Sequence record: MK268344.1
Length of the DNA: 64,000 nucleotides
Strand: one strand, 5' to 3'
Part shown: one piece after another, positions 6,017-58,907 of the stretch
Layout of the letters: each line of letters starts with the position of its first letter
Position numbering within the stretch: position 1 is the first letter of the stretch
Made by a program: the position numbers and the translations under genes
The notes under the pieces: model-generated
Seen by the model: only the letters and a program-made list of their open reading frames with translations
Told to the model about the DNA's origin: nothing
Databases searched by the model: none

Positions 6017-7069
6017 ATGACTAAAAAAATTAACGAAGCATCAATTAAACTTGATGTAAATGGACTAGAATCTGAAGATTTTGAAACACTATCACGTATG
6101 CTTGCCCTAGCGGGGCAAGCAGAAACTAATACTGGTTCTGTCGGTACTAGTGGTCTTGCTCCCCTAAAACCAATGGATTTTGATAGTATTGGTGATGAAG
6201 AAGTTGGGTCAGAAACACAACCTATTATGAATCCAGCAGATGCAATGGCACCTGTATCTCCTGCTGATGGTGCAGCAGAACTAGGTGATGCTATTGATGA
6301 CCTAGCAGGTACTGTATCTGATTTCGGTGCAGATACCGAAGAAAGTGAAATGTCACTTGACATGGACGGTCAACCAAGTGTATCATCTGAATCAGAGTTT
6401 GAAGATGACGAAGAACTTGGCGATATTGTTGGTTTCGATGATGTAAGTATGGAACTTGACGATAATGGTGATGACGAATTCGATATGAGTCGTATGTCAG
6501 AACTAGCTGGTTTAGGAGAATCTCTAATTACTGAAGATGATTCGGCAGCAGAAGAAGTTGTTGATACTGATGCTCGTGAAGATGAAGATCTTGTTGATGC
6601 AGAAGAAGATGCCGCGAATGAAGAATTAGATGAAAGTCAACGAATTCTACCGGATCTTTCACTAGAAGAAGATTCTAGTGAAGCTGAACAATCATATGGG
6701 CCATTCAATACTGAACGTGAAGCGGTTGAAGATGGAATGCGTCAAACTAATGGTGTTGAAGGTGATAACTTCATCATTGTACCACAAGGTAACGCATACT
6801 ACTGGAAACGTACTGTACATGAAGAACTACAGAACGAACCAGAACCCGAATTCTTTGATAATGATGGTATTGAAAATTCTCGTCATAATTATCGCCACAA
6901 ACGTACTGCATTAGGTGATAATCCACTACTTCATAATGTTCGTGAATCAGAAGAAGTAGATGCTGATAACGATAAAGAAGATGATAATGACGATGAAGAT
7001 GTAGAACAAATCTACGAAAGCATTGCTGCACAGTATGAGAAGTTTCTAGGTGGCTTAAATGGCAAATAA
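6017..7069 (+). CDS. Highly acidic protein (candidate internal head/core protein)
   Basis: 350 aa, very rich in D/E; AAGGA RBS. Confidence 0.5.
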   Translation: MTKKINEASIKLDVNGLESEDFETLSRMLALAGQAETNTGSVGTSGLAPLKPMDFDSIGDEEVGSETQPIMNPADAMAPVSPADGAAELGDAIDDLAGTVSDFGADTEESEMSLDMDGQPSVSSESEFEDDEELGDIVGFDDVSMELDDNGDDEFDMSRMSELAGLGESLITEDDSAAEEVVDTDAREDEDLVDAEEDAANEELDESQRILPDLSLEEDSSEAEQSYGPFNTEREAVEDGMRQTNGVEGDNFIIVPQGNAYYWKRTVHEELQNEPEPEFFDNDGIENSRHNYRHKRTALGDNPLLHNVRESEEVDADNDKEDDNDDEDVEQIYESIAAQYEKFLGGLNGK

Positions 7070-7863: not shown

Positions 7864-7894
7864 TTGGGACAAACCGAATAACATGTGATATAAT
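7864..7894 (+). promoter_or_regulatory. Phage-specific promoter motif, copy 1
   Basis: TTGGGACAAA-N10-TGTGATATAAT (extended -10, TGnTATAAT) upstream of the MoxR ATPase gene. Confidence 0.8.
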
Positions 7895-10881: not shown

Positions 10882-10912
10882 TTGGGACAAACTGAGAAAA
10901 ATGTGATATAAT
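10882..10912 (+). promoter_or_regulatory. Phage-specific promoter motif, copy 2
   Basis: TTGGGACAAA-N10-TGTGATATAAT. Confidence 0.8.
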
Positions 10913-29332: not shown

Positions 29333-29363
29333 TTGGGACAAATGAGATTTTATGTGATATAAT
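29333..29363 (+). promoter_or_regulatory. Phage-specific promoter motif, copy 3
   Basis: TTGGGACAAA-N10-TGTGATATAAT upstream of clpA. Confidence 0.8.
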
Positions 29364-37700: not shown

Positions 37701-40700
37701 TGCAGTACTTGGTGATACTGAGATATATTCACCACGTGATAGAGCTTCTTGGCTCCAAGCAAGGAAATCTTTACCGATTTGTTCCCAATCTTGAATAACA
37801 CCATCTTCGTTTTGGTCTTCAAAAATCCAACCTTTAGATTCTAGGTATTGACCATAAGAGCATAAGAAAGTATATACTTCTTGGAACGAATTGAATACTG
37901 TTCCGTATTCATATTCTTTAGTTTCTTTTAAGTACTCAACATATGTTACTACACTGCGATTACCAACTTGAGTTGTAACTTTCTTGCCATTTTTATTTGG
38001 CATCTGAACTGTGAATTTAGCACCAACTAAATCATATCCATCAATCTGATATGCAGAACCATTCCAAGTGATTTTTACAGCACTTAACACTTCGTTGCGA
38101 ATAGCAGAACTTCTTACTAAGCCAATGTGCTGACTTTCAGTACTGATTAGACCGAAAGATTCAGAATAGAAGCTAAGTTGATCTTGCTTAGTGAACCCAC
38201 CAAGTTTATGACCAATATTAATATAAGAAGAACGTAGTACATCACCATATTTGGTAGTAATGTTTTTATTCTGATATAGTAAGTTATCAGTGATTGCCAT
38301 TTGATAACCAAGTACACGGTTATTATTTTCACCATTCACTAGAGTTTGTGAATTGAAGTTTAAACGCTTGTTAGTATCACCATATAGGAACTGGTAGTCA
38401 TCCGTTACTACTTTCTTGAGAGTACTTCCACGAGTATCGTAGAAATAGTTCGCAAACTGTGCTGGTTTAGCACGATATAGCAATAGAGCTTGATCATAAG
38501 GGAACATACCAGTGTTCATGTAAGTGAATTCCATGTCACCCATGTCACCATAAGCCCAAGGTTCTGAACGATGATTTAAAGCACCACTTACTAGCCCTAG
38601 AACTTCAGGGGCAATTAGTTCAAAATCGTAAATTGTTTCACCTGATGATGTTTGACCATTTGGTGTTAGTTTAAATGGTTGTTTACCACAACGTTTGTAT
38701 TTGTCATACTGACCAGCACGAGAACCAAATAGAATCGTACCAGTGCTTGCATCACCTTTAATACTACCAACATCCCATAGTCCACTAGGAACTAGGTCAC
38801 CATTCTCATCAACTACTTCAGCAGTGTATACAGTTACAAAATCAGTTGCACCGTCACCAATACGAACGATAGTCGGTTCGTATTCTTGGTTCCACCAAGC
38901 AGGACGTTGAGCAAAGCCAAACATTTCCCACGGATGAGTTGCAGGACGGTAAGTACCGTACATGTCAGTGTAAATTCCACGCCATGAACCACGAGCAGGA
39001 TAATCAGTTACTTTTCCATCAACAACATAAGTAGTTCCGGTGTAGTTCCAAGTCATCCAATTACTTTGGTCATAGTTGTTAGTACTGTTACTAATACCAT
39101 TAGTTGCGATGAAGTTAATGTAACCACGTAATAATAGAGTATTATATTCAGAAGAATCATAATCAGTATTAGGGTTAAATGGAGTAGGGAATAGATCACT
39201 AGCATCCATTGGTGGTTCATAATCAACAACTTTAAATGAGTTATCAATACTATTAAAAATACGGTTTTCTAATTCATAAATTACATCATCCATCTTATCG
39301 ATGCCGTTAATAACTTTGTATGCTTTAGAAATAATACCAGTATGGCTTACGTTGTAGCAGCCCAATTCTTTACCAGCATAAATGTATGTTGCTTTTTGTG
39401 GTGTATATGCTTTTAGAATACCCATAAATTGTGGTGTAGGTGGAATAAAAGTACGGTTAGTACCAACGCTACTACCTACAGCATCTAAGAAGAATGGGAA
39501 TGTATTATTTTTACCAACATTGATAGTACTGAAAATAGCATCAACGATATTAGAAGCACTATTCGCAAGGAAAGCTGCTTTATCATCATTGTACATATTA
39601 ACCATTTGAGTATTGAATTTATTCAAGAAGCGGAAATATTCTGATTGTAAGAACATAAATGCTTCGAATAGGTCAATATCCTCATTAGCAGTGTTTAGCA
39701 TTAATGGTAGCATTGATGCTTCGTTCTGGATGATTTGAGTACCAACAGAGTTGTCAACTAGGCCAGCTTCTAGACGTTCTTCATAGTTGTTGAAATCATC
39801 TACTGTACCTTTTGTAATATTTTTACGTACAATTTCTCGGAAATGTGGAGTATAATCGCCTTGGTGAATATACTTGATATTTTCATTATACGGGTTGTTT
39901 TTTAGGTTGATTGGAATCTCATAAGAACCGAGATTAAAATCAGGAGTTACTTCTTTACTATATGTACGAATACAAATAACAGTATCTTCATCTATATCTA
40001 CTTCATTGTCGATTGTTACATAATCAATCATACCATCAGTGTTTAGCTGGACAGTATAGTTTTCAGTTTTTACACCGTTGATATCAATTTCAATAGTTTC
40101 ATTTGGGTTATTTGGGTTAATTTTTTGTGCTACTTCATATTTGTGATTATACACATCATAAGAAGCTGCTTGTTCATTAGTACGGTGCCAATCCATGAAA
40201 GTGCTGTTTTCGGCTTTGTAATAACGATAGGTTGCATCAACGCTACGAACATATGCAAACATATTTTCTAGTGGTGATTCAAAGTTTTCCATTTCGTCAA
40301 CAGTGTCGAATACACGATACATTGCTGTTTTTGTTACTTCTGGGACTTGGAATACATATTGTTTGGAATTCTCTTTAGAACGAACCCAATCAGTTTTTAG
40401 AGTGCCAACTATTTCACCATCAACTTCATTGATAACGTTATAGTAATATAAACCTTGAATTTCAGTTGTTACACCTAGTTTATCAAACTCATAGCGAATA
40501 CTTTGTAGGAAGTTCTCAAATACATAATAGTTGTATGAGCTTAGTTCTACGTTAGTGTCATAAATGCTACTGTAGTTGTAATCAAAGTTAACTTTTAAAC
40601 CAAATAATGAAGAACCCTTGAAGTTAGAACTTGGGTAAATTTGACCATCACTTAATTTAACACCATTACGGTCATATAATTGAAATAGTGGGAATGTATT

Positions 40701-41738
40701 TGTACTTGGCTTGGCTTGTGCACGAATCCATGCAGAACCGTTCCAGTACATTGCAGTATTTGCATATACATTACCGGATTTAATTAGTACCACGTCACCA
40801 ACATGTGGTTCACCACTTGGGCGGTCGGATGTTTCTTCATCTTCATCTAATGCTAGACCATAAACACGTGATCCATCTTCCATCGATTTGATGTATACTT
40901 TATAGATACGGTTGTTTTCTCCGGGGTTACCAATACTAGTGAATAGTACGCGGTCACCAGCTTTTAGAACATATCCATCAATACGGATGTTATCAGCTTG
41001 GCTTTTGTTAACAATATCTTCTGGCTTTACGGAATCCGAGAGATAGTTAACCACACCACGGAACTTAGTCCCATAATCGAGTAGTTCAATATTTTTGTTA
41101 TATTCAATAATTGGTGCTTGTGCACGAGCGAAACGAGTACTTTGAGCCAATTCATCAGTTAAAATGGTTCCATCAGCAAGAGTTTGACCTACAGTGTACC
41201 AAAAGTTTTGCAATGACCAAGTATTGCCATTTAAGGCACCTCTTTCCATTACAACATAGTCTGGAGAAATACCGTATTCGTTTTGGGTGTCCCAAAGATA
41301 GGTACTAAAGTTAATTAATTTATTTGGGTTAATAGGTGGAGTCCAAGAATAAAATTTACCGTTGAATAGACGGTCTTGGTTTTCCGTTAGACAGCCGTAA
41401 TGCTCTAGATAACCAACTAGATCTTCATAAAATTGTAGACTGCGAATGCTTTGATCTTCATTGCGAGATACATACGCAGGACTTAATTGATACGCCTGTC
41501 TTTGTTCTGTTAATTCTTTAATGAAAATCTTACCGGAAGCCGCAGGGGAGCTACTATCACCGATATAGCCGTCTACGATTTCTTGTTCAGCAGGATTAAA
41601 CCACTGTTGAATAATATCATCACAAAAAGTTTGGATCTGCTCTAAGCCTTGCATCCATTCTGGAAGTCTTTTTATGAATAATTTTTTATTAACAGCTTCA
41701 GCTACTTCTGTGGGCTGGAATTTAAATTCATTAGCCAT
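31710..41738 (-). CDS. Giant virion structural protein (3342 aa), probable baseplate wedge (gp7-like position)
   Basis: Single 10 kb ORF immediately downstream of gp6-like; N-terminal YSWTPPINPNKLINFSTYLW; aromatic/N/D-rich. Confidence 0.6.
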   Translation of the reverse strand: MANEFKFQPTEVAEAVNKKLFIKRLPEWMQGLEQIQTFCDDIIQQWFNPAEQEIVDGYIGDSSSPAASGKIFIKELTEQRQAYQLSPAYVSRNEDQSIRSLQFYEDLVGYLEHYGCLTENQDRLFNGKFYSWTPPINPNKLINFSTYLWDTQNEYGISPDYVVMERGALNGNTWSLQNFWYTVGQTLADGTILTDELAQSTRFARAQAPIIEYNKNIELLDYGTKFRGVVNYLSDSVKPEDIVNKSQADNIRIDGYVLKAGDRVLFTSIGNPGENNRIYKVYIKSMEDGSRVYGLALDEDEETSDRPSGEPHVGDVVLIKSGNVYANTAMYWNGSAWIRAQAKPSTNTFPLFQLYDRNGVKLSDGQIYPSSNFKGSSLFGLKVNFDYNYSSIYDTNVELSSYNYYVFENFLQSIRYEFDKLGVTTEIQGLYYYNVINEVDGEIVGTLKTDWVRSKENSKQYVFQVPEVTKTAMYRVFDTVDEMENFESPLENMFAYVRSVDATYRYYKAENSTFMDWHRTNEQAASYDVYNHKYEVAQKINPNNPNETIEIDINGVKTENYTVQLNTDGMIDYVTIDNEVDIDEDTVICIRTYSKEVTPDFNLGSYEIPINLKNNPYNENIKYIHQGDYTPHFREIVRKNITKGTVDDFNNYEERLEAGLVDNSVGTQIIQNEASMLPLMLNTANEDIDLFEAFMFLQSEYFRFLNKFNTQMVNMYNDDKAAFLANSASNIVDAIFSTINVGKNNTFPFFLDAVGSSVGTNRTFIPPTPQFMGILKAYTPQKATYIYAGKELGCYNVSHTGIISKAYKVINGIDKMDDVIYELENRIFNSIDNSFKVVDYEPPMDASDLFPTPFNPNTDYDSSEYNTLLLRGYINFIATNGISNSTNNYDQSNWMTWNYTGTTYVVDGKVTDYPARGSWRGIYTDMYGTYRPATHPWEMFGFAQRPAWWNQEYEPTIVRIGDGATDFVTVYTAEVVDENGDLVPSGLWDVGSIKGDASTGTILFGSRAGQYDKYKRCGKQPFKLTPNGQTSSGETIYDFELIAPEVLGLVSGALNHRSEPWAYGDMGDMEFTYMNTGMFPYDQALLLYRAKPAQFANYFYDTRGSTLKKVVTDDYQFLYGDTNKRLNFNSQTLVNGENNNRVLGYQMAITDNLLYQNKNITTKYGDVLRSSYINIGHKLGGFTKQDQLSFYSESFGLISTESQHIGLVRSSAIRNEVLSAVKITWNGSAYQIDGYDLVGAKFTVQMPNKNGKKVTTQVGNRSVVTYVEYLKETKEYEYGTVFNSFQEVYTFLCSYGQYLESKGWIFEDQNEDGVIQDWEQIGKDFLAWSQEALSRGEYISVSPSTASAKFGSEFGSVQSVTQFNGGVWSLLDDENSGIRPYEIETTRLGSVFTVRVSDDIDKRMALIRLSLVSYEHAVVFDDVTIFGDSIYIPVYGSVQELIRMYGYVTGNWNGRLEAPGFIVLEAGTLPDFETLVTDFHRYYDLDDPVSNVSLRDLGRHLIGYQSREYLLQMITSEPARVNFYKGYIRDKGSNQVLERVLRVSKSYNTDEYKALQEWAFKIGVYGNIYGTKSLQFQLVNNEFKQQPQLVTFDVNATENMGDNNIVYFGKQGDDSRWITRPKGIISFPTRSGRSENINLPDIGPVTLDEIDYVTRDYETAYADRLAYMAKTGEVPNSVWMFHDMTDTWNIFNLVSTSVKLVAIEAIESENGLPTTHCKLILSAAHGMKDGDYFYFVDETNFMPDLLASEMQYFNAGTAANELIVPVDISIDMTFSAPQPVLYRYVSRFANTSAKNDYINKKYSYNAPETKLFDKATTYNSQTNITELYINIYDPINGVLPGPAMTNVSFIGSHDPALYNSNGEEEMAWASDKVGTVWWDTREAYFLDYTRPIYDKNGNVDNTATLEYKRVNWGKLLPHSEINIYEWVCSPVEPFDWERYCDEQSKLNKTENSYVPSGEAIEENYCQFVEYDTVTQSYMNKYYFWVKNSIYVPQVKNRDKSCQEIARIIKNPLTLSTPWYSPISETSFIMSDMQYEVTDDKSILTITYKEDHDDVVKHEQYQLCKEGDNYNFNPSIWNSLWNSLMGQEPLSNGKVQELHYPESELGLGSSKVWFKDIIEARRTFVDAANDVYRHLNITTNTVVMNDVFNVKTTEVNPNEVGFKVLTFNNELVIATNEDKFLENDAVLVSSNGTLPSPLTSTNVYFVHYDENGYIRLMNNPSTSGTAVTITLENKGEGQQSMIKQSDYIESLGTSLDMTQYWKLADWYDVGYNEDTEYTAEASLEVANSKNYQVGDIIRVTDADGVWTLYRRDSSRNLLIWTAIGRQNSTVELNNQLYNNYTQYKEDGSLSNVEINVRKALALLKNSFDGYQSQIVFDMVKYVHVEQTVVDWVFKTSYIYIVGLDQSLKQNYSNSEDLIGQIVTYFEEVKPYRTKIRSQIEQKTSDSDEINGLLNDLDPNGYIYRDGQWVKSQADIWDYEYAQYNTTTNKWEVKGSLPSDFELPNRRFQEIDIMMHYDNVQCVPDENMPNVNVLENVNNSYQSNEQDFLTKGSHYKLQRYVYTQPEADIALIQIKIGTELMKKYPSFDIGLGFETGVDMMYMKLNADVPATEQFTKDLLEITTNVLANDESTTTMQQYRMYNTLSNRLKLYTNLDVDSIEEQVDCPFKGVAIDDNPNTRLPFGFAGSNGENFGYIMHSRDLFETIVDLVKEEHPNYTHDEIYFYLQYEYGLYCWNELTSPDEDGNQEDSFYRDALYVLTAMRNSYDPDSADHYEFAKAILDNRDIDAYCMVMAPRKLVQVRNDAGQYFDVPFDQSLDDFMEEEFIVRQNNVYVAEINLDDLPVDENNPLYSDYQKLMTSSNDKSYYDDMNAFDNLAFESQTKRIELNAKDTVTPTQDSYFIDISDLNPNKQDMSQIRFTVDGYSYDEENMPQLKNQGNFQVEGYITLNPYNKAEALVSIPRYDEAIALMDRTQIYHNEVKYSSHVYDVINVNGRVRLDSNHGLKVGDSVAVFTPEGEDYAANAVDGSFVTILTASNIRTGNRPRVFTVSAVNGDVVTVAGLVFSNTYTHASTDWLRGAPYTSINIVRVTSFNDAEFKTSKYVKYSADRSYAVDAMDYDVFYDVMLDGGSYDDGYDIDDYDVWYISNEVFEENGVEIDHGYYQPIYGEGVLSELVRSKLEDSLQIYVYEYNTSTIKPVFVPPVGDEDEGHWTYGLPLVDNVFIQTNSRCTVIVNDSIENITYVSQPKAVGQVSITGNVVNGVSSSEGDIVSLNSELLLIRRNGNAVRGYKGSAEIYYPTPITDVGINLGKEDKLYMYANNYPVIPLSTFSSSLQVSGTLLSSLLK

Positions 41739-57051: not shown

Positions 57052-58008
57052 ATGATGAAAACTAAAACTCAAAACTTTATAGAAAAATCACAAAAGATAC
57101 ATGGGAGATTATATGACTATACCAAAGTTGTTTATGAAAATGCTAAAAGTAAAGTATTGATAGGATGCAAAAAACACGGATATTATTATATAACACCCAA
57201 TAAACATTTAAATGGGGCGGGTTGTCAGTCTTGTTCAAAAGAAAATAGAGTTAAATTGAAGACTAAATCTAAAAAAGATTTCGTAAATGATGCCAACATA
57301 AAACATGAACAAAAATATGATTACAGTTTAGTATCTGAAAATATTAAAAGAAGTGATCGTGTTGAGATAATTTGTGCCAAACATGGAATATTTGAACAAA
57401 CTGCACAAAATCATTTACAAGGTCAAGGTTGTCCACAATGTGGTTTAAAAACGAGAATTTCTAAACGAACTTTAAGTTCTGAAGAATTTATAAATCGTGC
57501 ATCATCATTACATGACAATTTTTATGATTATTCAAAAACAATATATACTGGAATGTATAATGAAATAGAAGTTATATGTCCAAATCATGGGAATTATCAT
57601 ATTCTTCCAGTAAAGCACTTACATCGTAAACAAGGTTGTCCAGAATGTTCGAAAGTAATGACTAAATCAAAAGCCGTAATTGAAATTTGTAAGTTTTTTG
57701 ATTCTAATGGGATACGCTACATTGAAGAATATAAAATCAACGAATGTAGAAATATTCACCCGTTGCCTTTTGATTTTTATCTAATAGATTATGATATACT
57801 TATTGAATATGATGGAATACAACATTTTAAACCTATAGAATATTTTGGTGGACAACAAGGATTAGATGAACAGCAATATAATGATAATATAAAAAATGAA
57901 TATTGTAAAAGTACAGATAAGATTCTACTTAGAATAAGGTATGATGAAAACTATCTTGAAAAAATAAAAGAGTTTCTTGATTCTTGGGACAAACAGCAAA
58001 AAGTGTGA
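57052..58008 (+). CDS. Free-standing putative homing endonuclease: 3 Zn-ribbon repeats (DUF723-like) plus PD-(D/E)xK / DUF559-like nuclease
   Basis: Three copies of H..YDY..V.Y...V.I.C.KHG.F...HL.G.GC..C; C-terminal LPFDFYL...IEYDGIQHF; AT-rich. Confidence 0.75.
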   Translation: MMKTKTQNFIEKSQKIHGRLYDYTKVVYENAKSKVLIGCKKHGYYYITPNKHLNGAGCQSCSKENRVKLKTKSKKDFVNDANIKHEQKYDYSLVSENIKRSDRVEIICAKHGIFEQTAQNHLQGQGCPQCGLKTRISKRTLSSEEFINRASSLHDNFYDYSKTIYTGMYNEIEVICPNHGNYHILPVKHLHRKQGCPECSKVMTKSKAVIEICKFFDSNGIRYIEEYKINECRNIHPLPFDFYLIDYDILIEYDGIQHFKPIEYFGGQQGLDEQQYNDNIKNEYCKSTDKILLRIRYDENYLEKIKEFLDSWDKQQKV

Positions 58009-58014
58009 TATAAT
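57984..58014 (+). promoter_or_regulatory. Phage-specific promoter motif, copy 5 (no downstream gene)
   Basis: TTGGGACAAA-N10-TGTGATATAAT; overlaps the end of the endonuclease gene. Confidence 0.8.
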
Positions 58015-58020
58015 ATAGAT

Positions 58021-58470
58021 ACAACTCAGTGTGGATGTGAAAGCATACAAATCAAACCTGATTCACTCGAAAATGTAGAGGACAGATGAGCAGACCACAC
58101 GTGCGAAGTGCAAATGAGACCCGTTAGGAGATGGCATAGTTAGTACCACCCACGGCAATGCGGCACTATAAACAAGCGTGTTAAGCAGATTGACGCTTGC
58201 TAGATAGACATATGAGGGACGACCTTACCACATTGCTAAGGGAGTTCAATTTAAGGCTGGCTTTAGATCCGTCTTGAATTTGAACAACATTAAGATTCGA
58301 TTGTATGGATTTTAATGTATGCGTACTAAGACTACGACCGTTGCACATGACCGTGATAGAGAGAAACAGAGCAACCCGCTTTCGTTCTGACTTGTTCAGA
58401 AATTCACGATACAATAATTCCGATGCTATCAGCGTCAAGCAATATTCAGATCCTTAATTGGGTCTTTTTT
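58021..58470 (+). ncRNA. Candidate large structured non-coding RNA
   Basis: Own promoter and terminator, no credible ORF, about 43% GC by hand count, multiple nested and long-range helices. Confidence 0.55.
58448..58470 (+). terminator. Terminator closing the candidate ncRNA
   Basis: agatcc-ttaatt-gggtct followed by T5. Confidence 0.65.
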
Positions 58471-58475
58471 ATTGT

Positions 58476-58660
58476 CTTCATTCCCCGATGGGGGGGATGA
58501 AATTGCCTCAACAAATCTCGTCAAGATATAAAAGTACAAATAATAAAATTCAATCATTAAAATGAATTGAAATTATGAATAACGAATGAAATGAGTTATT
58601 CATAATTGAAAATTCTTAGACAATCGAAGATTGGCTAATCAACATAAATGATTAGAAATT
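58476..58660. repeat. Cluster of inverted repeats in AT-rich DNA (candidate origin)
   Basis: C4/G7 hairpin at 58477-58501; perfect 13 bp IR at 58571-58583/58595-58607; further IRs at 58549-58571, 58621-58633 and 58635-58655. Confidence 0.6.
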
Positions 58661-58669
58661 TAGATACAA

Positions 58670-58700
58670 AAAAACCAGCAATAAATGCTGGTTAGTTTTT
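58670..58700. terminator. Terminator
   Basis: aaccagca-ataaa-tgctggtt with flanking A and T runs. Confidence 0.75.
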
Positions 58701-58907
58701 ATTTTCTTTTGAAACTTTTTTGTTATATGCACGAACCAGAAGATCCCTTTCATTTGTTGGCATATTAAGTAGCATCTCATAGGAAGTGTTAGTGATATAG
58801 ACAGATATTTCCATTAGAGCCGCTTTGATCTCTTTAACATTCAGTTCCATATCACTAAGCACTTGTCTTATTTCTTCTGGTTTGGCAATGAGAAGCTGAA
58901 TCCGAAA
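58692..58907 (-). CDS. Unannotated gp51-like ORF in the -1 frame of the gp26-like gene (probable frameshift extension)
   Basis: Open frame FRIQLLIAKPEEIRQVLSDMELNVKEIKAALMEISVYITNTSYEMLLNMPTNERDLLVRAYNKKVSKKIKN* starts at the slippery T TTT TTC. An internal ATG at 58850 lacks a clear RBS. Confidence 0.6.
   Translation of the reverse strand, partial: FRIQLLIAKPEEIRQVLSDMELNVKEIKAALMEISVYITNTSYEMLLNMPTNERDLLVRAYNKKVSKENKN

Follow-up and report, generated by a model that had tools for sequence, protein, structure and literature searches.

What is encoded in the 683-bp gap that GenBank leaves without annotation between CPT_Munch_274 and CPT_Munch_275 of Salmonella phage Munch, a Rak2-like jumbo myovirus with a 350-kb genome? 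We analyzed the 64,000 nt around it (MK268344.1, approximately 124,001–188,000), referred to below as the window, whose numbering is used for the Munch copy throughout. A preliminary description of this DNA had flagged 58021–58470, inside the gap, as a novel large structured non-coding RNA (ncRNA) with its own promoter, long-range helices, and a pseudoknot. That headline holds up, as covariation in the structure proposed here lies above that of controls and no Rfam family matches. The G+C content counted by hand for 58021–58500 is also exact (206/480 = 42.9%, compared with 36.2% for the window), and is reached by 1.3% of 480-nt windows.

The unit to which this RNA belongs probably serves as a handle for replicating phage DNA or for some other core process of the phage. 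Its presence in multiple copies and in bacterial islands changes the functional reading of the element, and we tentatively favor, at a probability of about 0.37, a cis-acting RNA-primed replication origin module that islands would copy in order to hitch-hike.

Evidence for a structured RNA core

Helices were listed from an all-against-all column scan and from reading a plain MAFFT alignment of 47 copies, and were then counted; the alignments used for covariation were those of MAFFT, not fitted to a structure. In the proposed structure (99 pairs), 87.0% of cells are paired, compared with 71.4% after shuffling (a level reached by 0 of 500 shuffles) and 39–44% when the partners are slid. The covariation score is 0.428 (0.163 shuffled, 0.07–0.10 slid), and 68 of the 99 pairs have changes on both sides (54.6 shuffled, 30–34 slid). 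Both the fold z-score (−3.23 on the plus strand, −0.73 on the minus strand) and the substitutions that keep G-U pairing, which are confined to the plus strand, point to the same strand. When paralogs are aligned, near-invariant blocks stand between stems of wholly different sequence in which complementarity is kept. By these comparative measures, 58021–58470 is the core of a real, conserved RNA with two predicted pseudoknots.

Reading the locus instead as a decayed or mis-annotated protein gene, or as a DNA repeat or mobile element conserved as DNA only, is nearly excluded. Such a reading can draw on an 85-aa minus-strand open reading frame (ORF) in the Munch copy, on small “hypothetical proteins” annotated over homologous regions in several GenBank records, and on a unit that is repeated and found in mobile islands. 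The ORF, whose conservation and translation the preliminary description had named as one possible refutation of an RNA, is interrupted by 1–6 stops in every frame in 45 of 47 homologs and kept only in the nearest relative, which favors RNA. Moreover, the lengths of homologous segments differ by non-multiples of three, a Pfam search with the 85-aa ORF gave no match, and the unit has neither terminal repeats nor a transposase; compensatory changes in helices, with G-U pairs kept on one strand only, also speak against conservation as DNA. A micro-ORF from ATG 58497 was rejected as well, its frame being shifted by indels among copies.

The RNA also matches no known RNA family; the preliminary description had recognized no tRNA, tmRNA, RNase P, or group I core in it. 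Rfam 15, whose families include group I/II introns, RNase P, tmRNA, 6S, GOLLD, ROOL, and HEARO/omega RNA, gave 0 matches at the gathering threshold over the whole window, and a search at E ≤ 10 over 57900–58750 returned only terminator look-alikes and noise, with neither GOLLD nor ROOL among them. Rfam searches with seven other copies gave no recurring family, and ARAGORN found no tRNA and no tmRNA in the window. A likeness of parts of the sequence to CR-IV/CR-V of RNase P or P7/S of group I introns was discarded because the order of elements and the helix partners misfit and Rfam gave no signal. In literature available as open full text, we found no description of the RNA in papers on Rak2-like phages or jumbo-phage ncRNA, in large surveys of phage RNA motifs, or in recent preprints on intergenic elements, and no RNA-seq study of a Rak2-like phage. 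As there is neither an Rfam family nor a published description, we rate the predicted RNA as a new class.

The core RNA (58021–58440, on the plus strand like all RNA features below) is approximately 420 nt long with 43% G+C and only a mild purine excess (55%). It has two predicted pseudoknots, and its junctions contain many nucleotides that never vary, among them GAAAAUGUAGA, AGAUGAG, ACCCGU, CGGCAAUGCGGC, GAUAGACAUAU, CUAAGGGAG, CGACCGUUGC, and GAGAAACAGAGCAACCCGCUUUCG. Its 5′ domain (58027–58101) is closed by H1 (58027–34/58095–101; 93.5% paired, 4 pairs changed on both sides) and contains a variable candidate GNRA hairpin (58035–48), followed by H1b (58058–68/58078–85; 83.7% paired, two-sided changes in 7 of 8 pairs) with its conserved loop GAAAAUGUA. 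H2 (58107–11/58163–67) encloses H3 (58121–24/58152–55), both 100% paired, and H3 in turn encloses a peripheral hairpin (58125–51) that is replaceable: some copies have a longer domain in its place, and U12988_269k, U2029_61k, and U7747_146k have no more than a UUCG loop. H4 (58173–79/58193–99), with compensatory changes in all 7 pairs, is separated from the well-supported H5 (58213–17/58223–27) by the invariant junction GAUAGACAUAU. Next comes a peripheral domain (58244–58286) with a conserved motif, UAGAUCCGUC...AAUUU, whose helices are candidates.

The first pseudoknot would join the loop AUUGUAU (58300–06) of a 12-bp stem (58287–98/58307–18; 87% paired, 11 of 12 pairs changed on both sides) to AUACAAU (58409–15); it is 95.6% paired, with 6 of 7 pairs changed on both sides, and is missing in one paralog type (92k). 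The 3′ core (58323–58408) begins with hairpin H8 (58323–35) and continues with three helices that are 100% paired in 47 of 47 copies: H9 (58340–44/58371–75; 3 pairs changed on both sides), H10 (58352–56/58404–08; 4 pairs), and H11 (58359–63/58379–83; 4 pairs). H9 crosses H10 and H11 to give the second predicted pseudoknot, and hairpin H12 (58385–401) is well supported. When the window is searched with a covariance model, R1, a single copy is returned, at 58319–58440 with 114.8 bits. The last helix, H13 (58422–26/58432–36), was read from the sequences (GAUGC/GCGUC in Munch, GACGA/UCGUC in Serratia phage BF); its count of 27% is uninformative because MAFFT sets these two forms out of register. 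The region is paired differently in the 92k type.

The motif of the peripheral domain (UAGAUCCGUC...AAUUU) lies within hairpin H12 in the 258k, 92k, and 269k types; UACAAUAUAGAUCCGUC follows AAGGGAG in three types and lies within H12 in the others. Written as (G)UACAAUAUAGAUCCGUC..AAAUU, the conserved motif occupies two alternative structural sites (58258–58282 or the hairpin at 58385–401 in window numbering), the behavior expected of a transplanted docking module that makes a tertiary contact.

Four helices picked out by eye in the preliminary description have compensatory changes among the 47 copies, namely gtgtgg/ccacac (58027–34/58095–101), the caagcgt/acgcttg hairpin (58173–99), cgtga/tcacg (58352–56/58404–08), and ttctga/tcagaa (58385–401). 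The remainder, taken together, do not rise above background (58.9% of cells paired vs. 57.5% shuffled; covariation 0.083 vs. 0.04–0.09 slid). The long-range helix ttgacgct/agcgtcaa is 50% paired and the proposed pseudoknot 58154–63/58228–37 is 53% paired; cctta/taagg, atagt/actat, aatca/tgatt, and agatccgt/atggattt do no better than controls; atgt-GAAA-gcat falls in a variable region of poor alignment; gatag/ctatc is 91% paired, but without compensatory change and with variants that break the pairing. The model drawn from these helices was a single-copy RNA, expressed late, with that pseudoknot and a helix (58190–207/58426–38) that would switch with the hairpin at 58173–99. All of its pairings are present in the Munch sequence, and gatag/ctatc is complementary in 91% of cells, yet the pairings lack compensatory changes and are broken in relatives, the competing local hairpin covaries perfectly, and 58426–36 forms a hairpin of its own. 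With an element that is multi-copy and a promoter that is not of the late type (see below), the switch model is nearly excluded.

Three ncRNAs that RNA-seq has documented in Pseudomonas phage PA5oct (ncRNA001, 002, and 004) were considered as homologs and rejected: the best nhmmer E-value was 0.46, found only at a similar C/G hairpin, and model R1 matched none. As a separate observation, ncRNA004 (L076, 617–1235), a 619-nt RNA documented by RNA-seq in this distant relative of the Rak2-like phages, has a TTGACA-type promoter at its start, a C/G-run hairpin (UUCCUUCCC-aaac-GGGGAGGAA) at its end, and short look-alike motifs, and may be an analog.

A repeated unit in jumbo phages and bacterial islands

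The core is one part of a predicted unit of about 650–700 bp that consists of a promoter, the ~420-nt RNA, an optional terminator-like hairpin, a C/G hairpin flanked by CGTCA boxes, and a further segment, module 2. The element is not unique: there are three further copies in Munch and more than 120 in relatives. Blastn against GenBank phages gave 62 records, all Rak2-like, with the unit at 4–5 separate places per genome and with hosts in Escherichia, Salmonella, Klebsiella, Erwinia, Serratia, Yersinia, Cronobacter, Pectobacterium, and Xanthomonas. Unannotated gaps of 640–800 bp mark these places in Serratia phage BF and Erwinia phage SNUABM_12. Two pattern scans of IMG/VR followed by nhmmer yielded 56 distinct copies in five orthologous types. 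From the first scan, 11 chance viral loci in unrelated, mostly GC-rich DNA were dropped (L031, L036, L038, L044, L050, L052, L057, L060, L062, L066, L070), and a tighter pattern added 80 metagenomic loci, every one a true match.

The five types hold the same genomic positions across genera and keep their type-specific features, and the phage copies all lie on the majority coding strand. Four copies can be detected in Munch (40,546–41,178; 100,086–100,808; 181,990–182,700, the window copy; and 262,901–263,554). The window copy is of “type A”, which lies between the gp46/endonuclease VII genes and gp26. Phage Yen9-04 (354 kb), for example, has five copies at 24.7, 93.4, 174.4, 260.5, and 334.9 kb; for five random points, a smallest gap of 68.7 kb or more has a probability of approximately 6e-4.

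Scanning one genome per bacterial species revealed eight full-length homologs (nhmmer E = 1e-95 to 1e-105), each with a TGAAAC-N17-TATACT promoter, core, G hairpin, boxes, and module 2. They are from Serratia fonticola (complete chromosome), a second Serratia, Silvania, Enterobacter chinensis, Buttiauxella, and other Enterobacteriaceae. Among 5,426 complete E. coli genomes, two have the unit, and a search of plasmids gave no match to it. In these islands of Enterobacterales the unit stands, one copy per island, at the edge of a small insertion of low G+C (8–11 kb), where its neighbor is either a tyrosine integrase or a recombinase of the large serine type. Often a CI-like S24 repressor is adjacent (in three island families it is the next gene, and convergent), and the insertions lie next to ffs, corC, or rof-tilS. 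Their cargo includes KwaA/KwaB (Kiwa) in RIT714, Hcp/DUF4225 and HNH proteins in Serratia, and DUF4326/DUF488/dual-OB proteins in E. coli LR-29-1; no replication, primase, or packaging genes were recognized in the islands inspected.

Individual islands differ in layout. In Enterobacteriaceae strain RIT714 (L165, 10001–17642), the island spans about 8 kb, is flanked by corC and a gene for an MFS transporter, and has, in order, a tyrosine integrase, the RNA unit, a 207-aa protein, an LprI-domain protein, a small resolvase, a 176-aa protein, and KwaB-KwaA; it is a candidate minimalist satellite or defense island linked to jumbo phages. In E. coli LR-29-1 (NZ_AP027515.1; L169, 9753–20303), the island is beside ffs, the gene for signal recognition particle RNA, and contains an integrase disrupted by IS3, a small recombinase, and the RNA unit inside a 1.4-kb unannotated gap. 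The Serratia fonticola island (L167, 10001–13334) has a large serine recombinase and then two ParB/RepB-like genes directly beside the unit, which is at the island end next to rof-rof-tilS; where the same gene trio recurs (L166), the copy scores 13.7 bits with model R1 and may be degenerate. Directly upstream of the island promoter in five loci (L080, ~6090–6125; L077, L079, L083, and L084) is a perfect 13-bp inverted repeat, CCCTATAAATATC-GGTA-GATATTTATAGGG. These islands encode the CI-like S24 repressor, so the repeat is a possible operator that would make the unit inducible.

In a maximum-likelihood tree, seven island copies and the syntenic type A copy of a divergent jumbo phage form one clade (support 99/99), and the E. 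coli island copy groups inside the type A clade of the phages, beside BF and Yen9-04 (95/93). On this tree, islands and phage copy A have exchanged units in at least two lineages, so that such transfers were repeated. Island copies are the closest relatives of 17 of the 74 metagenomic units. Separately, two divergent jumbo phages, IMG/VR UViG_3300031414_000131 (L029) and Ga0308166_1000037 (L090, L120, L128), have copies nearer the island clade than those of other phages, and on this evidence their lineages are likely donors or recipients in phage–island exchange. A conserved 286-aa neighbor of the unit in an island was considered as a shared partner protein and rejected, as tblastn gave no phage homolog; nor is it related to the LprI-domain protein that a different island encodes.

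The predicted promoter of the window copy (57986–58014, plus strand) consists of a −35-like GGGACA (57986–91), a 17-nt spacer, and an extended −10, TGA-TATAAT (58006–14), from which we infer a transcription start near 58021. The phage promoter noted earlier before the gap is thus present, and pattern scans show it conserved before all copies, phage or island, as a homologous G(G/A)(G/A)ACA or TGAAAC-N17-TATAAT (or TATACT). Its −35 variant, 17-nt spacer, and TG-extended TATAAT place this predicted promoter in the sigma-70-type, altered-(−35) class, which the paper on phage CBB calls a “divergent RpoD-like promoter” and finds mostly upstream of DNA-synthesis genes (PMC5259590). Co-expression with the late sigma factor and chaperones, as the preliminary description had supposed, is not supported: the promoter is sigma-70-like with an altered −35 and not of the late ATAAATA type (PMC5259590). 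The pattern GGGACA-N17-(TG)TATAAT, or more loosely GRRACA-N17-TATAAT, occurs 4 times in the window, compared with 0.08 expected by chance. The three other exact copies, GGGACAAA...ATGTGATATAAT at 7866–7894, 10884–10912, and 29335–29363 on the plus strand, are predicted starts of the same temporal class.

At its other end, the element was said to stop at a terminator hairpin. The hairpin and its T-run are there (58448–75), but the element does not end with them: in paralog alignments conservation runs about 180 nt further than 58470, to ~58650. The terminator-like hairpin, T1 (AGAUCC/GGGUCU and a U-run, 58448–58475), passes a terminator scan, has covarying stems in the 174k, 258k, and island copies, takes another form in 92k, and is missing in the 32k and 335k types. 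Because it is missing in two of five types and conserved RNA structure lies beyond it, T1 may be leaky or purely structural. The C4/G7 hairpin that follows (UUCAUUCCCC-gau-GGGGGGGAUGAA, 58477–58501; 85–89% paired) has a GGGGG invariant in every copy, and its changes are almost all C-to-U, so that pairing (as G-U) is kept only on the plus strand.

The hairpin is flanked by CGTCA box 1 (AGCGUCAAG, 58431–39), which overlaps H13, and box 2 (CAAAUCUCGUCAAG, 58512–58525). The two boxes (58431–58439 and 58515–58523 in the window) are spaced 47–87 nt apart among copies and vary in parallel, not complementarily: TGTCA occurs with TGTCA in 3 of 3 cases, CAAG versus CAG tracks between them, and so does the upstream Y. 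This parallel variation suggests that one factor recognizes both. Box 2 was also considered as a general phage promoter element and rejected, since it has a single match in the window. An AT-rich stretch (58525–58610; 86 bp, 17% G+C) forms module 2, which extends to ~58650. Its long hairpin has an outer helix (58564–68/58611–15; 91.6% paired) and a candidate inner stem (58571–83/58595–607) with the conserved loop GAAYGAARUGA, at which MAFFT shifts register; a second hairpin, M2b (58621–25/58629–33), is 97% paired, and 4 of its 5 pairs show compensatory changes. As in the core, compensatory changes in module 2 exceed the shuffled and slid controls.

The Munch type A copy ends at a bidirectional intrinsic terminator (58673–58700, both strands, from the terminator scan) common to the unit and the convergent genes on the gp26 side, and likely the 3′ limit of read-through transcripts of this copy. 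Weak Rfam matches there to “Trp_leader” and STnc were dismissed as terminator look-alikes. In the 32k, 258k, and 335k types, module 2 stops a few bases before the ribosome-binding site (RBS) or start codon of a co-oriented gene. The 32k type (the Munch 40.5-kb copy, L018 40500–40570, and those of CBB, GAP32, and Yen9-04) has an extra hairpin and U-run between promoter and core, which looks from its sequence like a copy-specific 5′ attenuator.

Around the Munch gap, the genes to the left are those of the gp47/gp46 recombination nuclease, an opposite-strand endonuclease VII, and a 318-aa zinc-ribbon ORF, and those to the right are the convergent gp26 baseplate-hub genes. The 318-aa ORF (57052–58008, plus strand), with repeated CxxC treble-clef/zinc-ribbon motifs and Pfam domains DUF723 and DUF4379, sits between endonuclease VII and the unit promoter, its stop codon abutting the −10 element. 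As it is missing at the syntenic site of Erwinia phage SNUABM_12, it looks like a free-standing insertion of homing-endonuclease type beside a conserved target.

What the unit may do

Conservation of the whole unit, promoter included, together with boxes that vary in parallel like protein-binding sites, points to a role in cis. If the unit is an RNA-primed origin, host RNA polymerase would initiate at the altered-(−35) promoter and the transcript would adopt a defined three-dimensional core; at the G-run/CGTCA/AT-rich region it would then stay as an R-loop or pass to the T4-type replisome, and the RNA 3′ end would prime leading-strand synthesis. A jumbo phage that infects the cell would then over-replicate any island with the unit, which could either spread the island as concatemers in phage heads or drain the replication capacity of the phage. 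We favor this role because the positions are conserved in strict synteny and evenly spaced, because an invariant non-template G-run and a stretch of 17% G+C follow the RNA, and because copying a helper's origin is the simplest route by which a T4-like phage could amplify, and possibly package, a gene-poor island. Pointing the same way are the islands themselves, with full-length units beside integrases and no recognized replication gene, and their exchange of units with phages in the tree. So do the enzymes: genes for gp43, gp41, gp61, gp32, UvsW, and two RNase H enzymes are present, and no gp59 helicase loader is recognizable in these phages. The promoter also belongs to a class found mainly upstream of DNA-synthesis genes (PMC5259590), and T4 oriF and oriG likewise use middle-mode promoters.

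Several points weigh against an origin. The RNA is far more elaborate than known primer RNAs, with its two predicted pseudoknots, invariant junctions, and transplanted tertiary module, and one so tightly folded should resist R-loop formation. To our knowledge, the origins of T4 do not make up a repeated family of homologs. Past the supposed priming site, module 2 is an RNA structure in its own right, and in four of five paralog types a co-oriented gene follows the unit directly, which makes a leader function possible. All these phages inherited the same arrangement, which reduces the even spacing to one evolutionary observation, and the island evidence would fit a decoy or sensor equally well.

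The main rival, of only slightly lower probability, is that the product is a large RNA acting in trans, with 4–5 genes providing high dosage or sub-specialized paralogs of a ribozyme, a ribonucleoprotein (RNP) scaffold, a self-assembling RNA, or a host-factor sponge; gene positions would then be irrelevant, and the island copy a decoy, competitor, or co-opted part. Such an RNA would best explain the architecture, which is of ribozyme or RNP grade (two predicted pseudoknots, invariant single-stranded junctions, GNRA loops) and in which peripheral domains are replaced, deleted, or transplanted around a kept core. A strong predicted promoter of its own, a terminator-like hairpin right after the core in three of five types, type-specific features kept across genera, and the precedent of phage-associated RNAs such as GOLLD and ROOL fit as well. 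Left unexplained are the conserved, evenly spaced positions, the conservation past the terminator-like hairpin, the parallel boxes, and the islands; no protein shared by phages and islands was found as a partner (the 286-aa neighbor has no phage homolog), and no cleavage or ligation junction or substrate is evident. A much less probable option is a cis-acting leader, re-installed every ~60–90 kb in a genome whose transcription runs almost wholly one way, whose structured transcript would modify its own RNA polymerase (processive antitermination resembling HK022 put) or control downstream genes. It would account for module 2 ending a few bases before the RBS or start codon in the 32k, 258k, and 335k types, for the attenuator-like 5′ hairpin and U-run of 32k, and for evenly spaced copies that all lie on the majority coding strand, in genomes such as that of CBB with 74 predicted terminators and 34 of 554 ORFs on the minus strand (PMC5259590). 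A leader fits four paralog types but not the window copy, where two terminators and convergent genes leave nothing downstream to control; the convergent CI-like repressor in three island families is a similar difficulty, and known antiterminator RNAs are about ten times smaller.

Returning to replication initiation, a bolder version of the origin hypothesis, which we consider unlikely though worth stating, would make the unit a portable RNA-based initiation device: the ribozyme-grade transcript, G-run, and CGTCA boxes would together make a primer and recruit the helicase for a T4-type replisome that lacks gp59, and the islands would be a new and extremely minimal class of jumbo-phage satellites or replication parasites with the RNA unit as their only phage-specific equipment.

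Comparison with known systems

If confirmed, the RNA is a new class of large pseudoknotted RNA comparable in size and conservation to GOLLD, ROOL, and RNase P RNA. In contrast to those RNAs, clues to its function are unusually rich: all Rak2-like jumbo phages examined have syntenic, evenly spaced paralogs, a G-run hairpin and two boxes that co-vary always accompany the RNA, and islands with anti-phage cargo have captured it independently. It would make testable how ~350-kb genomes with T4-like replisomes start replication, and whether virulent enterobacterial jumbo phages have satellites, in culturable systems (E. coli phages 121Q/PBECO4, Salmonella phage Munch, Serratia phage BF). It also provides an annotation model for “empty” gaps of 0.6–0.8 kb, now covered by spurious small ORFs in many GenBank records.

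GOLLD and ROOL resemble the predicted RNA in being hundreds of nucleotides long and phage-borne, with many helices and pseudoknots and no associated ORF. They differ in that the unit has no Rfam match to them, even at E ≤ 10, and we know of no report of either as five syntenic, evenly spaced paralogs, within a unit of promoter, G hairpin, and boxes, or beside integrases. HK022 put is likewise a cis-encoded structured RNA at the start of phage transcription units, but it has about 70 nt and two stem-loops. The window copy has no downstream genes to read into.

At the ColE1 origin, a folded RNA II of ~550 nt is the pre-primer. Like the unit, ColE1 has a sigma-70-type promoter and a folded non-coding transcript of ~0.5 kb, and the overall size is similar. 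There, the folding of RNA II decides whether the hybrid persists at a G/C-run region and primes, with RNase H involved; for the unit this sequence of events is our inference. ColE1 differs in that it shares no sequence or structure homology with the unit, its RNA II is without phylogenetically supported pseudoknots, and it has an antisense RNA I, whereas the unit's minus strand has no fold signal; the unit is moreover present 4–5 times in a virulent phage genome.

T4 oriF and oriG combine a middle-mode promoter with a downstream unwinding element and are primed through R-loops, and T4 replicates and packages plasmids that carry one of its origins. The Rak2-like phages share with T4 its type of replication and recombination proteins, including UvsW and RNase H, and have several dispersed sites. 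At oriF (uvsY) and oriG (34), as in the unit, a sigma-70 −10 with a replaced −35 is followed by an AT-rich stretch, and the promoter also serves a downstream gene. That any DNA with a T4 origin is replicated and packaged would explain the islands. In contrast to the copies of the unit, the origins of T4 lack homology among themselves and work without a structured RNA, and MotA-type activation is known for the T4 side only.

Satellites typically copy a cis-acting site of their helper. The nearest natural analog of the islands is the phage-inducible chromosomal minimalist islands (PICMI), which depend on a virulent phage and are packaged as concatemers (PMC10803314). Like PICMI, phage-inducible chromosomal islands (PICI), and P4 satellites, which depend on a virulent or helper phage, the unit islands are small, chromosomal, and integrase-bearing, with defense cargo. 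These candidate satellites differ in having no recognizable primase/Rep, AlpA, or packaging genes, and in that a large RNA unit, rather than a cos or pac site, is what they share with the phage.

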